A stretch of DNA of 54,964 nt. Origin: Fonticula alba ATCC 38817. Lineage: Eukaryota > Protista > Nucleariida. Below the pieces are notes generated by a model, which worked only from the letters and a program-made list of their open reading frames with translations, was not told where the DNA came from and did no database searches. A program made the translations under genes and the position numbers. The DNA lies in assembly GCA_000388065.2 (NCBI GenBank), contig KB932204.1. One strand, given 5' to 3'. Below, piece by piece: positions 37,311 through 44,009 of the stretch. Numbering within the stretch: position 1 is the first letter of the stretch; every line of letters begins with the position of its first letter.

Positions 37311-38394
37311 NNNNNNNNNNNNNNNNNNNNNNNNNNNNNNNNNNNNNNNNNNNNNNNNNNNNNNNNNNNNNNNNNNNNNNNNNNNNNNNNNNNNNNNNNN
37401 NNNNNNNNNNNNNNNNNNNNNNNNNNNNNNNNNNNNNNNNNNNNNNNNNNNNNNNNNNNNNNNNNNNNNNNNNNNNNNNNNNNNNNNNNNNNNNNNNNNN
37501 NNNNNNNNNNNNNNNNNNNNNNNNNNNNNNNNNNNNNNNNNNNNNNNNNNNNNNNNNNNNNNNNNNNNNNNNNNNNNNNNNNNNNNNNNNNNNNNNNNNN
37601 NNNNNNNNNNNNNNNNNNNNNNNNNNNNNNNNNNNNNNNNNNNNNNNNNNNNNNNNNNNNNNNNNNNNNNNNNNNNNNNNNNNNNNNNNNNNNNNNNNNN
37701 NNNNNNNNNNNNNNNNNNNNNNNNNNNNNNNNNNNNNNNNNNNNNNNNNNNNNNNNNNNNNNNNNNNNNNNNNNNNNNNNNNNNNNNNNNNNNNNNNNNN
37801 NNNNNNNNNNNNNNNNNNNNNNNNNNNNNNNNNNNNNNNNNNNNNNNNNNNNNNNNNNNNNNNNNNNNNNNNNNNNNNNNNNNNNNNNNNNNNNNNNNNN
37901 NNNNNNNNNNNNNNNNNNNNNNNNNNNNNNNNNNNNNNNNNNNNNNNNNNNNNNNNNNNNNNNNNNNNNNNNNNNNNNNNNNNNNNNNNNNNNNNNNNNN
38001 NNNNNNNNNNNNNNNNNNNNNNNNNNNNNNNNNNNNNNNNNNNNNNNNNNNNNNNNNNNNNNNNNNNNNNNNNNNNNNNNNNNNNNNNNNNNNNNNNNNN
38101 NNNNNNNNNNNNNNNNNNNNNNNNNNNNNNNNNNNNNNNNNNNNNNNNNNNNNNNNNNNNNNNNNNNNNNNNNNNNNNNNNNNNNNNNNNNNNNNNNNNN
38201 NNNNNNNNNNNNNNNNNNNNNNNNNNNNNNNNNNNNNNNNNNNNNNNNNNNNNNNNNNNNNNNNNNNNNNNNNNNNNNNNNNNNNTGGGCGGCCCCTCTA
38301 TCCTGGCCAGCGTGTAATCGGGGCTGGCCAGCGCCCAGGGCTCAGGCCCCGGTTCGACAGATGACAGAGACACGCCCCGGGCGTGTCGGCTGGC

Positions 38395-39697: not shown

Positions 39698-42600
39698 ATG
39701 ACCGTCACCGGACGCCCGCCGGCCGCAAGTGGCCAGCTGGAAGCGCGCCCGGTCGAAAAGCGCAAGGGCTCCTCCAAGCGCCGCACCTCCATGGGGATGG
39801 TCCAGTCGGCCTCGGTCGTGTCGGTGTCCGCCTCGCAGGCGGCCCTGGAGGAGGCCGACCGACCGCCGACCGACGCCGGAGACATGCCGGCCGCCGCCGC
39901 GGCGGACAGCGGCGCACACACGCCCGATATGCTGGAGGCCGGCTCGCCCGGCGACCGCGGCGGGTCCCCCCCGGCGACCGACCCGGCACCGACGGCCCAC
40001 CACCCGGATGCCGACCTGGCCAGCATCCACAGCCTCGAGCCCGAGTCCAGGCCGGACCTTGGGGGGGACCCGCCGCGGTCGCGGTCGCGCTCGTCTTCCT
40101 CCAGGCGCCGGGACCCCGGCGATCCGGACAAGCCACGCCGGACCCGGCGCTCGGACCCCGCCGACCCCGATCGCCCCCGGCGCACCGACCCCAATGACCC
40201 CGCTCGGCCGCGGCGAAGCCGCCGGACGGACCCCAGCGCTCTCGACGCCGAGAGCGGGGTGTCGGCTGCCCGGGTGGTTGGCAGCGGGTCGTCGGTGCGC
40301 ACGCGCGGCACCACATCCCGCGGCCGCCCGGAGCGCGCCCTGTCGCCGACCTTCGCCGACGAGCAGGATGGCATGCGCCGGCATGCGGCCGAGCGGTCGC
40401 AGCGCGCCGGCCCGGGCAGTGCCACGGCCCCGTCGGCCCACCATGCCGCCGCCCGGCAGTCACAGGCCCAAGCCACGAGCCCGATCGCGCAGCCCACCAC
40501 CCCGGGCGGGCTGCCGGCGGATTTCTTCCTGCCGCGCGTGTCGAAGGAGTTCTACATCTGGGAAAAGTCCCAGCTGGGCCAGCTGCCCACCGGGTGGGAG
40601 ATGCTCCAGTCGCGTGGCAGCGATCCCGCAGACCCGCACCCCTCCTTCAGCGGCCCGAAGACCCTCTACATCGAGTGCGTGTCGGCCGCTCCCGGGGCAG
40701 ACGCCGTCGATGGGGCTTGTGCCGGGTCGCGCGTCCCAGCTCAAAGTCCCGCCGCCCTGGCACCTTTTCTTTCTTTCGCGCCCTCTCTCCCTCTCTCTCT
40801 GTGCCTCTGACTGGACAACGGTGACGCTGCTCTCGCCCTCGCCCCCGCCCGGCCAGCCATCTGAACCAGCAAACCACCTGGATCGACCCGCGTACCGAGA
40901 AGACCCGGACGATGAACATCCTCGAAACCAAGTATGGCGGTGCGCATATACCCCACCCTCTCCCCCCCCTGCCCCGGGTGAATGAGCCGCCGGCGGAGGC
41001 CCCCCTCGGCTCGGGCCCTGGGGTCCCCTGTGGCGATCGATCGATCGGATGCTGACGACACACGCACCGCCCTCGGTGGCCTTCCTTCCCGGCCGAAGAG
41101 CTGCCCTATGGGTGGGACGAGTGCGTGGACAAGGACATCGGCGTGTACTACCTGGACCACACCATGCAAACCACGTACCTGGACCCGCCTTGGGACGAGC
41201 GGGTCCGCTTCCAGGTGGCCGTGCTGGCCAACTTCATCACCGAACAGACCCGCCGGATGCAGGTGCGCGCCCTTGGGCCCGGCCGGCAGCGCGGCCTCCC
41301 TCCCGCTTGGGCTCGCCCGCGCAAGATGCCCCTTCCCCTGCGCCCGCCGCTCGCTCGCTCCACACACACACACGCACTGGCGGACAGCTGACAAGGGGGT
41401 GCATCCTCCCAACTGCCCGTCCATCTGGCACGTGCGCCTCGTCAGCTCCTGCAAGACCGCGCCAAGATGGATGACGCCGCGCGCGCGGCCGAGGCCAGTC
41501 GCCGGGTGACCGAGCTGGAGGCGATGCACAAGAATTTGTCGGTCGAAATCGAACGCCTGGAGGCGCTGGAGGCCGAGAGCCGCCGGCGGATAGGCCTCGA
41601 GGGGCTGAAGCATGGGTCGCGTGGGCTCCTGGAGGACATCAACCTCGAGGGGCTGACCCCCGAGGAGATCGAGGTGGAGCTCATGCGCGCGGAGAAGCTG
41701 CGCCATGAGCTCCTCCAAGAGCAGAGCCTCATCGAGGTGGAGGGTACGCCCGCGCGCGAGTCGGTTCCTGCCAGAAGGGGAGCGAGGGGGGGGGGGGGAT
41801 GGCGGCTGTGCCTCGCAACGACCCTGGTCATGGTGCTCTTCACACGCGCAACGCCCAGCAACTGACACACTTGCAATCCACCTGGCCGTGGGGGCGGGGA
41901 AAACGAACAAACAAACAAACAAACAAACACAAATCCCCACCCGCTTGTGGGAACTGGACCAAAACAACACCCCCCAGAGCTCCGCTCGCAGCTGCAGGAT
42001 GTCGACGACGAAATCCGCCTCGAGCGCATGCTTCTCAATGAGGATGCCGAGACGTGCTCGACCATCGCCGACATGCTGGCCGAGCGGCTGAATGCCCTGC
42101 GCGCGGCTCGCATGCCGGCCCCGGGCGAGCGGCGCCCCGGCCAGGAGGACGACGATTCCGACGCGCCGGCCGAAGACACCACCAGCAACATCGCCAACCG
42201 GACGGAGGCCATCCGCGCCGAGCTCATGGAGGCCGAGCGCGATGTGCGCGACGAGCGTGAGCGCCGGCGCCGGGCCGAGGCCGAGCTCCTGCAATTCCAG
42301 ATGAACATCATGCGCGGCCCGGCCCGCGATGAGGACGACGATCCGGACGAGGACAGCCAGTCGCAGGCGCGCCGGCGCCGGCGCCGGGCCACCGCCTCGG
42401 CCATCGCCGCGGCCAACCGCCGTCGCGAGAAGGAGGAGGGCCTGGCCCGAGGTGGGGAGGCCACCGGGCCCGGGGCCGGGCCCGGGGCCGGCTCGACGCC
42501 GCGTGCCAATTCCCTCGCCGGCGAACTGGGCGCCGACATTCGGCGCCTGCACATGCGTCTGCAGCAGCAGCGTCTCGAGGTGGAGACATTCGAGCGGGCG

Positions 42601-43200
42601 CGCGCGGAGCGCTCGGCCGCCGCTGCGACTGCCGCCGAGGATCCCGAGCGCCCGGCTGCCGGCCCGCCGGTCGACCAAACGTCCCGCAAGATCCGCGAGA
42701 TGCATGGCATGGTCGAGGCGTCGGAGAGCGTGCGCGAGGCTGTCGTCACCAACTACAACCCGGACAAGTCGTCCTTCCAGTGCGTGTCGCCCCCCGCGTC
42801 CCCGCCCCTCTTTGTCGCTCCCGCCCGCGCAGGTTTCCGCTTTTCATGCCTTCCACACGCCCGGCGAGCCCGAGGACCGGGGGCTGCCCCGCGCCGTGGG
42901 GCCGGCCCGGAGGAGGGCGCTCCTCAGCAGCCCCGGTCCGGCGTCGATCGGACGGCCAAGGCGAAGTCGGTCCCGCCCCGCTGTTTTGATCGATCTGAGA
43001 CTGACCATGCCCGCCCTGTGACCTGGCCGCTGTGCGTGCGCCCTGTGCCGCCGACGCTCCGCGATCTGGCCGCGCCTTGTCCTGGTGTTGTTCTCCGTCC
43101 GGCCGGGGGGAACAAAAAAAAAAGGGAACGCATGCTCTTCTTTGCTGCCAACGCGGCCAACAACAAGTCCCCGCCGCCGGTCCCGCGGAAACTCTGGTGA
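39698..43200 (+). CDS. Kibra/WWC-like protein: disordered N-terminus, tandem WW domains, coiled coil and C-terminal SFxExMxFF motif (predicted 799 aa)
   Basis: Exons 39698-40674, 40857-40939, 41099-41262, 41446-41743, 41978-42779 and 43125-43200 total 2400 nt in frame. WW1 LPTGWE...LYIDHLNQQTTWIDPR, a 15-aa linker, WW2 ELPYGWDECVDKDIGVYYLDHTMQTTYLDPP, then heptad-rich helix. The spliced C-terminus NPDKSSFQ|ERMLFFAA parallels human KIBRA PPEVQSFREKMAFFT. Confidence 0.75.
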
Positions 43201-44009
43201 GGGGGGGCGGCAGCACGGGGCCCCGAGGCCGCGGGCCCGTGGCTGCCGGCCGCGGGCGCAAGAGGAGGCGTACCCCGAGCGAGATCGGCGGCGGTGCAGC
43301 CCCCGAGAGAAGGCGACCCAGCCAGCGATGCTGATCGTTGCCGTGCCCGAGCAATTGTGGCCTCGGCACCGGGCGTGCTGGAAGCCAGCAAGCCGAGGAG
43401 GGCCGCGCCCCCACACCCGGCCCGAAGTAGGTAGAATACACACCCCCACCCTGACACGCATGTGCAACGACCGAGGCGAGTGCGGGGGGGGGGGGGGGNN
43501 NNNNNNNNNNNNNNNNNNNNNNNNNNNNNNNNNNNNNNNNNNNNNNNNNNNNNNNNNNNNNNNNNNNNNNNNNNNNNNNNNNNNNNNNNNNNNNNNNNNN
43601 NNNNNNNNNNNNNNNNNNNNNNNNNNNNNNNNNNNNNNNNNNCCCCCCCCCCCACGGTCGCCCCTTCCGGTCGACCTTTTGGTTGTTGCGCCGCTGTTGT
43701 TATCGCCGCTCCGGGAGGCGTCGGCGGGAGGCCGCCCCGGAGGTACCAACTCTTGGGTGATCCTGGCTGCCGTGAGACTTTTGCACTCGCAGGGGCGGTG
43801 GCCCGCGCGATCTGGCCGCCGGCCTTCGTGTCGCCGTGTCTCAGCCCCCGGGTGGTGGGGGGATGGTCGGCTATTTGGGCGCCGGGGGCGATCCGAGGCC
43901 GCCGCCCACACATGGTCAAGTTCCCTCCCTACATGGCTGCCCCCTCCCCTCCCCTCCGCTTCCTTTCTCACTCTCCCCCCTGTCCTGCTTGGGCGGTCTG
44001 CCAGCACAC

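Follow-up and report, generated by a model that had tools for sequence, protein, structure and literature searches.

Kibra is regarded as a regulator of holozoan or animal origin. Its family, the WWC proteins, is defined in reviews by two WW domains in tandem, a coiled coil, a C2 domain, a motif for atypical protein kinase C (aPKC) and a PDZ-binding motif (PMC7829927; PMC12916667). The WW12 unit of KIBRA relies on the linker and on the helix that follows WW2, and its partners are the PY motifs of LATS1, PTPN14 and AMOT; the coupling by linker plus helix gives KIBRA and MAGI2/3 a high-affinity, antiparallel mode of binding a pair of PY motifs that lie close together (Lin et al. 2019, PMC6744271). 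Here we analyse a window, i.e. the whole stretch of 54,964 nucleotides (nt) taken from contig KB932204.1 of Fonticula alba ATCC 38817 (assembly GCA_000388065.2), a slime mould and protist related to the fungi, in which the gene H696_02608 encodes a protein of 799 amino acids (aa). An original prediction, made from the letters of the DNA, had called it a hidden Kibra orthologue. Our analysis suggests that with H696_02608 Fonticula alba has its own member of the Kibra/WWC family, which is short and without a detectable C2 domain, and we would give this reading a probability of roughly 60%.

The original prediction had asked whether published surveys already score this lineage, and one of them does. 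Chen et al. 2020 scored Kibra as absent in Fonticula and fungi because they required a C2 domain, and the same criterion gave a score of 0 also for Capsaspora and choanoflagellates (PMC7035326). A passage in PMC10959527 cites Sebe-Pedros 2012 for a Capsaspora Kibra. The literature that we searched holds no positive link between Kibra and Fonticula, and none with chytrids or Holomycota.

The exons were joined independently from the sequence, giving a coding sequence of 2400 nt, i.e. 799 aa and a stop codon, which is letter for letter the public protein H696_02608 (P0001 in our alignments). The six-exon splice that yields the tandem WW domains was therefore correctly predicted, and the gene cannot be called hidden since its 799-aa model is already public annotation; a search with exon 1 returns the NCBI entry 'hypothetical protein H696_02608' (799 aa, 100% identity), and the UniRef name is 'WW domain-containing protein'. 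All five introns are of the GT..AG type with exactly one CTGAC branch-site-like pentamer each. The GC content at third codon positions (GC3) is 0.81-0.92 across the exons (0.90 in exon 1), and the composition of the introns is flat at 0.6-0.8. A six-frame open reading frame (ORF) at 41947-43200 reads through intron 5, which has a non-coding-like in-frame GC3 of 0.68. RNA-derived contigs in the runs X2 (134+106 nt) and X4 (96+66 nt) join 42779 to 43125 and skip 345 nt bounded by GT..AG with zero mismatches, i.e. they use the distal acceptor that had been predicted. The two runs are of one sample, and parts of the gene are present in four small runs of 2012; the RNA depth is ~3.6, and the coverage reached one of the five junctions, namely the last. 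Since the contig is spliced, the libraries of X2 and X4 contain complementary DNA. H696_02608 is expressed and is spliced at its last junction. Intron 5, if retained, would insert 115 extra residues just ahead of the conserved ERMLFF helix; at this low depth the contigs across it were all spliced.

From its N-terminus, which is disordered, the protein continues through two WW domains and a long coiled coil to the motif NPDKSSFQERMLFFAA at its C-terminal end. This motif is assembled by the last splice, with ...SSFQ/ERMLFFAA spanning the junction of exons 5 and 6. WW is the only Pfam domain found in it, with 39.1 bits on the tandem (two stretches) and 26.1 bits on exon 3 alone, and no Pfam domain was found in aa 1-284. 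Matches to PsbQ, TAF4 and BrxC were rejected as sub-threshold noise.

The WW tandem resembles that of KIBRA in spacing, sequence and predicted fold. In the Fonticula protein WIDPR and ELPYGW are separated by 15 aa, and a helix starts directly after WW2. The same 15-residue spacing between WIDPR and ELPxGW, as the original prediction had it, was found in all the animal-type KIBRA rows with the motif (19 matches) and in 38 of the 43 matches in the family of short relatives described below. It is 14 in MAGI2 by the alignment of PDB sequences, and the linker counts of 23 versus 24 aa in Lin et al. 2019 agree with MAGI2 being one residue shorter (PMC6744271). The 15-residue spacing is not due to chance. 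When residues 285-430 were compared with all PDB sequences, the best match was KIBRA WW12 (6j68) with 59.9 bits and E 2.4e-15, in an alignment running into the post-WW2 helix, followed by MAGI2 with 46.5 bits. A profile made of Fonticula and chytrid sequences only scores 102.6 bits for KIBRA (positions 5-130) and 87.5 bits for MAGI2 (5-86).

We predicted the structure of the WW region (P0001:288-432, alignment of 77 sequences) using AlphaFold2 (AF2), with a predicted local distance difference test score (pLDDT) of 93.2. The model consists of WW1 (strands 13-17, 35-39 and 44-46 of this segment, with pLDDT ~66 in an inserted loop), a structured linker, WW2 (strands within 72-93) and a helix at 100-144, i.e. 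aa 387-431, so that the coiled coil directly after the WW pair appears where it had been predicted. The top six PDB matches of the model by Foldseek are all KIBRA WW12 (6jjw, target-normalised TM 0.75 and root-mean-square deviation 3.3 A), followed by MAGI2, and the tandems of YAP, SAV1 and ITCH are far worse than both. WW1 retains the Tyr, His, Thr and second Trp, which we take to be the class-I PPxY-binding positions. WW2 retains these positions too, except for the second Trp, which is replaced by Tyr; KIBRA has Ile there, so that both proteins have a WW2 without the second Trp. Profile scores and the predicted fold together show a KIBRA-type, tightly coupled WW-WW unit in the Fonticula protein.

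The likeness extends beyond the WW domains. The family profile aligns residues 9-404 of animal KIBRA as one stretch and its C-terminus as a second, with the order conserved; the relative P0002 matches KIBRA by BLASTP with E 1e-24 over 328 residues, and the central helical block of a relative aligns with KIBRA residues ~213-260. A hidden Markov model (HMM) of full-length animal KIBRA matches the Fonticula protein with E 1.6e-22. The nearest clusters by protein language-model features are WWC2, WWC3 and WWC1, which we consider a lead only. The alignment of the family with KIBRA by hhalign covered the WW region only, and therefore the C-terminus was tested using separate HMMs with shuffled controls, on a target set of 7052 sequences of which 6880 were shuffles. 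The HMM of the animal KIBRA C-terminus found 17 short-family proteins with E<0.01, the best shuffle having 0.16. The HMM of the short-family C-terminus, built with Fonticula excluded, found Fonticula residues 696-789 with E 1.9e-7 (30.1 bits) and reached animal KIBRA C-termini down to 9e-8, the best shuffle having 0.34. These profiles show that, with the short family as intermediate, the coiled coil and the C-terminal module are tied to their counterparts in animal KIBRA.

The animal KIBRA consensus in this region is RTSLDLELDLQA...LP.WL...SKEI.KLR...P...SFREKMAFFT, and a mollusc KIBRA reads ELPAWL ... NALTTSFREKLAY at the matching place. The C-terminal coiled coil, the P-x-W (where Fonticula has diverged) and the ...PD..SF(R/K)EKM.FF are common to animal Kibra and the Fonticula protein. 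The C-termini of Fonticula and of the mollusc KIBRA do not match significantly in pairwise BLASTP. As the Fonticula motif is not significant against animal-only profiles, its homology with the KIBRA motif is supported by transitive rather than direct sequence evidence. The AF2 model of the module has three helices (mean pLDDT 79.7, predicted TM score 0.43). It found nothing meaningful in the Swiss-Prot part of the AlphaFold database, all matches having E>3, and so the fold yields no functional clue; we found no described function for the C-terminal SFxEKMxFF helix.

The Fonticula protein has many relatives of the same short form. In the first large-database search we found unnamed proteins of 460-590 aa and the chytrid Borealophlyctis, and beyond them the only named matches were KIBRA-like and WWC2. 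An exhaustive profile search of 1.84 billion representatives gave 72 proteins below 1e-30; its animal matches have WW, the WWC1 hairpin and C2 by Pfam and are kibra by their source names. A third large-database search, made with the family profile, recovered nothing but the query, as low-complexity words swamped the candidates, and adds no taxa. The short family (~350-600 aa) is present in many chytrid fungi (Blyttiomyces, Nowakowskiella, Clydaea, Gonapodya, Polychytrium, Synchytrium, Caulochytrium and Borealophlyctis), in filastereans and in Syssomonas. Its layout is WW-WW, DPPW, a coiled coil, a central helical block and a C-terminal ...PDW(I/V)K...SKTLR.K...NPD.LSFRERMLFF. In the whole family, long forms included, the filasterean members are CAOG_03283 and CAOG_07806 of Capsaspora and one short and one longer gene of Pigoraptor; Syssomonas, the choanoflagellate Salpingoeca kvevrii and animals provide further members. 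The suggestion that this architecture is special to an aggregative amoeba does not hold, since many chytrids and filastereans have the same short form.

Among the closest known relatives are the chytrid proteins, e.g. Borealophlyctis HK104_001995, Blyttiomyces BDK51DRAFT_47614, Gonapodya M427DRAFT_143237 and those of Polychytrium, Nowakowskiella and Clydaea, which share the architecture from end to end, including NPD.LSFRERMLFF, and fall into one clade with Fonticula. They differ in their length of 400-600 aa, in having neither the long N-terminal extension nor the WW1 loop insertion, and in keeping the PDW(I/V)K...SKTLR that Fonticula has lost. Two of the chytrid proteins (P0019 and P0020, e.g. 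from Clydaea vesicula; 405-433 aa) are named 'Membrane-associated guanylate kinase, WW and PDZ domain-containing protein 2' at NCBI. This name looks like a best-hit transfer error, because 405-433 aa are too short for a MAGI protein and the related short-family members scanned with Pfam, which do not include these two, have WW only.

The holozoan protist members of the same family include CAOG_07806 (2199 aa) and CAOG_03283 (575 aa) of Capsaspora and P0131 and P0010/P0012 of Pigoraptor. Like the Fonticula protein, both Capsaspora proteins have WW as the only Pfam domain, and hence the lack of a C2 match is no special feature of the fungal side. With 257-288 bits, CAOG_07806 and P0131 are far nearer to animal KIBRA, and the filasterean short genes differ in a 10-residue linker and a diverged tail, LTFTQKLEYF. 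In CAOG_07806 (P0090) the WW tandem lies at 1378-1514 behind ~1370 residues without a Pfam domain, an N-terminal extension of great length unless the gene model is a fusion. Another protein, P0008 (1064 aa, from a Logan assembly), has a myosin motor domain followed by a KIBRA-like WW tandem and the following helix.

We built a tree of WW12 and the helix with 95 rows and 130 columns, which includes HECT-type tandems; MAGI, SAV1 and YAP were compared by PDB scores and folds only. One clade (99/89), apart from the HECT/NEDD4-type tandems, unites KIBRA with the short family and with two myosin-linked WW proteins, and in it the myosin-linked P0008 and P0009 are the sister group of KIBRA plus the short family. 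This agrees with the PDB scores, the clade profile and Foldseek, so that the WW pair is nearest to KIBRA and not to MAGI or NEDD4, as had been predicted. Within it, most chytrids fall into one group with Fonticula (97/80), and a second group (99/88) contains animals, Capsaspora, Pigoraptor, Syssomonas and the choanoflagellate. The tree resembles the species tree, which suggests a single ancestral gene. The approximately unbiased (AU) test does not reject the grouping of all fungal-side sequences (p 0.25). It does not reject the grouping of the Fonticula/chytrid clade with the filasterean short genes either (p 0.51), and hence strict orthology and ancient paralogy are indistinguishable by this test. 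Orthology seems somewhat favoured by the 15-residue linker and the PxW, which the fungal-side proteins have in common with KIBRA proper and not with the filasterean short genes (10-residue linker, no PxW). The predicted 'Kibra orthologue' therefore stands as a homologue in the Kibra/WWC family, which may be either an orthologue or an ancient paralogue.

Animal Kibra/WWC1-3 (PDB 6J68; 'Protein kibra' of Branchiostoma, P0064) shares with the Fonticula protein the N-terminal WW-WW, its spacing, the post-WW2 helix and the coiled coil, and differs from it in several respects. The Fonticula protein has 799 aa, including a disordered N-terminal extension of 284 aa, and a 15-residue insertion in the beta1-beta2 loop of WW1. 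It lacks any detectable WWC1-like helical hairpin (PF25802), C2 domain and aPKC-binding site, and it has no ADDV tail. Since C2, the aPKC motif and the PDZ-binding motif, which are among the defining features of WWC proteins, were not matched, it would be a family member of reduced, or primitive, architecture.

These differences and several other results weigh against placing the protein in the Kibra/WWC family. Pfam finds no C2 domain in the Fonticula protein, and aa 520-690 are judged by sequence to be helical or of low complexity, leaving no room for a beta-sandwich; C2 was also below the Pfam threshold in three of the eight animal KIBRAs scanned. PF25802, which scores 110-183 bits in animal KIBRAs, has no match at E<=1 in the Fonticula protein or in nine relatives and is not matched in either Capsaspora protein. 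The full-length animal KIBRA HMM has no match to the aPKC-binding region in the Fonticula protein, and the C-terminus is ...PPPVPRKLW and not the ADDV PDZ-binding motif; the absence of C2 and of the ADDV tail had both been predicted. The post-WW2 helix is aligned differently by different tools, and Trp88, the key Trp of KIBRA in this helix, is not conserved in place and has no clear counterpart; in the fungal-side clade there is an invariant DPPW with its Trp three residues before the KIBRA Trp88 position. At the C-terminus, Fonticula is not among the matches of the animal KIBRA C-terminus HMM in the 7052-sequence set, and the P-D/x-W motif common to KIBRA and other short-family members is lost in it. 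The full animal KIBRA HMM aligns its positions 1115-1133 with Fonticula 766-784, the expected spot, with only 0.3 bits. The C-terminal KIBRA motif of the original prediction is thus in the right place and significant via the intermediate profile, but not by direct comparison. The tree, with its 130 columns, has no MAGI, SAV1 or YAP rows. It places the Synchytrium and Caulochytrium sequences on the holozoan/animal side, and filastereans have two genes, with the AU result given above. There is no partner, PPxY client or phenotype on record for the Fonticula protein, and Hippo (SARAH-containing), Salvador, Merlin and Yorkie are scored absent from Fonticula (PMC7035326).

The two genes in filastereans lead to a reading in which the short form is an ancient paralogue. 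The opisthokont ancestor would have had two WWC-like genes, of which the short one was kept in Fonticula, chytrids, filastereans (CAOG_03283, Pigoraptor) and Syssomonas and lost in animals, and the fungal side would have lost Kibra proper (CAOG_07806, Pigoraptor P0131, choanoflagellates, animals). Both gene types are indeed found in Capsaspora and in Pigoraptor. The animal KIBRA HMM gives 257-288 bits for the filasterean long type and 88-102 bits for the short type, near the 58-98 bits of the fungal-side proteins, and holding the Fonticula/chytrid clade with the filasterean short group has no likelihood cost. In the free tree, however, the filasterean short genes are on the holozoan side (99/88). 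The fungal-side proteins also share their linker length and the P-x-W before the last helices with KIBRA proper and not with the filasterean short proteins, and therefore the filasterean short type looks like a derived copy. On balance we consider the ancient paralogue doubtful.

A more radical view is that there is no kinship with Kibra at all, and that H696_02608 is a generic WW-plus-coiled-coil protein in which the tandem is KIBRA-like by convergence or by shared descent with MAGI and the C-terminal motif is chance. The tandem of MAGI2 and MAGI3 (PDB 6JJZ, 6KKG) is also a tightly coupled WW pair with a structured linker and a C-terminal helix; that of MAGI2 is merely 13-15 bits below KIBRA, with a fold score nearly equal (target-normalised TM 0.72). 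The automatic names of the two chytrid homologues and the lack of significance of the C-terminal motif against animal-only profiles also fit this view. But MAGI proteins have PDZ and guanylate-kinase domains, which Pfam does not find in the Fonticula protein, as predicted; their linker is one residue shorter than the 15 residues of Fonticula and KIBRA, and they have neither the coiled coil nor the SFxEKMxFF module. Three more blocks, in conserved order, tie the short family to KIBRA with shuffle-controlled significance. The first comprises the post-WW2 helix and the coiled coil, the second the C-terminal coiled coil and PxW, and the third SFxEKMxFF. There was also no MAGI among the 150 best exhaustive-search matches checked by Pfam. 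We find such a chance resemblance very improbable. Still harder to believe is that the model is an annotation artefact or a decaying gene, stitched from ORFs in a GC-rich genome prone to long spurious ORFs. The locus does have long overlapping ORFs in all frames, and the thin RNA coverage shows one of the five junctions. Against this, GC3 periodicity is strong in every exon and in none of the introns, homologues in other phyla can be aligned with the product over its whole length, and the sole covered junction is spliced exactly according to the model. Membership in the Kibra/WWC family remains the reading that we prefer.

The coordinates of the gene and its parts are given in Table 1. The antisense ORF at 40741-42705 was rejected as an artefact of the GC-rich sequence, as it failed the codon-position GC screen. 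There are a (CAAA)n microsatellite in intron 4 (41897-41937) and a CT-rich tract in intron 1 (40774-40812), both skipped as repeats in the read search. The window has nine runs of N, e.g. at 37311-38285 and one ending at 43642, whose flanks are long G or C homopolymers; these assembly gaps are close to the 3' end of the gene, and thus the 3' untranslated region may be incompletely assembled. In the disordered N-terminal extension we observed three tandem copies of RR.DP.DP..PRR at 40106-40222 (aa 137-175). Vertebrate WWC3 likewise has an Arg/Pro-rich N-terminal extension (PMC12916667), and the two extensions are probably a case of convergence. The tail after the conserved helix (aa 786-799, 43156-43197) is proline-rich, KSPPPVPRKLW, and fits the PxxPx(R/K) pattern of SH3 ligands; the tail of the relative P0002 has a Pro-rich stretch, too, and ends in ...PRKFQ.

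Table 1. Coordinates of H696_02608 and of its exons, introns and protein regions in the window.
Feature	Position	Strand	Description
Whole gene, start codon to stop codon	39698..43200	+	six exons, 799 aa; public model H696_02608, Fonticula alba
Exon 1	39698-40674	+	N-terminus (aa 1-284), disordered and rich in Arg, Pro, Asp and Ser, then the beginning of WW1 (LPTGW ... TLYI)
Intron 1	40675-40856	+	splits WW1
WW1, aa 296-338	40583..40893	+	aligned to KIBRA WW1; ~15-residue insertion in the beta1-beta2 loop
Exon 2	40857-40939	+	end of WW1 (HLNQQTTWIDPR) and 15-residue inter-WW linker (TEKTRTMNILETKYG)
Exon 3	41099-41262	+	WW2, aa 354-386 (to 41196), and start of the post-WW2 helix
Exon 4	41446-41743	+	coiled coil 1, continuing the post-WW2 helix; based on the AF2 helix and the family profile
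Exon 5	41978-42779	+	central coiled coil, low-complexity stretches (acidic and basic) and the larger part of the C-terminal module
Central conserved helical block, ~aa 574-620	42175..42315	+	...AERDVRDERERRRRAEAELLQFQMNIM; common to the short family; alignment A1 columns 421-460
C-terminal module, aa 696-789	42541..43167	+	interrupted by intron 5; coiled-coil helix, second helix and NPD..SFxERMLFFAA helix; from HMM, AF2 and alignment A5
Intron 5	42780..43124	+	345 nt, GT..AG, single CTGAC at 43001, in frame, stop-free
Exon 6	43125-43200	+	(Q)ERMLFFAANAANNKSPPPVPRKLW, then stop codon

If H696_02608 belongs to the Kibra/WWC family, the opisthokont ancestor would have had a single gene from which both it and animal Kibra descend. 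The helical hairpin, the C2 domain, the aPKC-binding site and the PDZ-binding tail would then be either gains of the animal side or losses of the fungal one. If the WW pair works like that of KIBRA, it may bind partners through PPxY-type motifs, either one or two that are closely spaced, which would run antiparallel across both domains. The coiled coil may serve self-association and the conserved C-terminal helices may recruit a further partner, so that the protein could be a scaffold. Its most attractive client might be a kinase of the NDR/LATS type, which we suggest only tentatively. Fonticula Warts is an active LATS kinase that rescues LATS1/2-null human cells (Chen et al. 2020, PMC7035326), and so a plausible kinase client exists. 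We infer a possible Hippo role of the Fonticula protein by this analogy. One could speculate further that the short form without C2 is the ancestral opisthokont Kibra, and that in Fonticula and zoosporic fungi it was already a scaffold activating Warts/NDR through its WW domains before Salvador, Yorkie and the SARAH-bearing Hippo kinase joined; we think this unlikely as a whole.

What is new is the identity of the protein, which by its sequence is a short Kibra/WWC variant extending the family to the fungal side of the opisthokonts. The Kibra/WWC family is probably older than the published surveys state, and the short form in Fonticula and chytrids would date its origin to the ancestor that animals and fungi share. 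The misleading automatic name MAGI2 on chytrid homologues may be corrected accordingly. As an ancient paralogue, the Fonticula protein would remain a WW-coiled-coil scaffold, although one that tells little about Hippo regulation. If it is the ancestral scaffold, the link between Kibra and Warts would be among the oldest parts of Hippo signalling and might serve an aggregative amoeba as an input for cell density or polarity. Both lineages keep a core made up of the coupled WW domains, the coiled coil and, at the C-terminus, the SFxEKMxFF helix. This core gives a testable hypothesis on what the C-terminus of KIBRA does, and organisms with few Hippo components may allow us to ask what the job of Kibra was before the full pathway existed.

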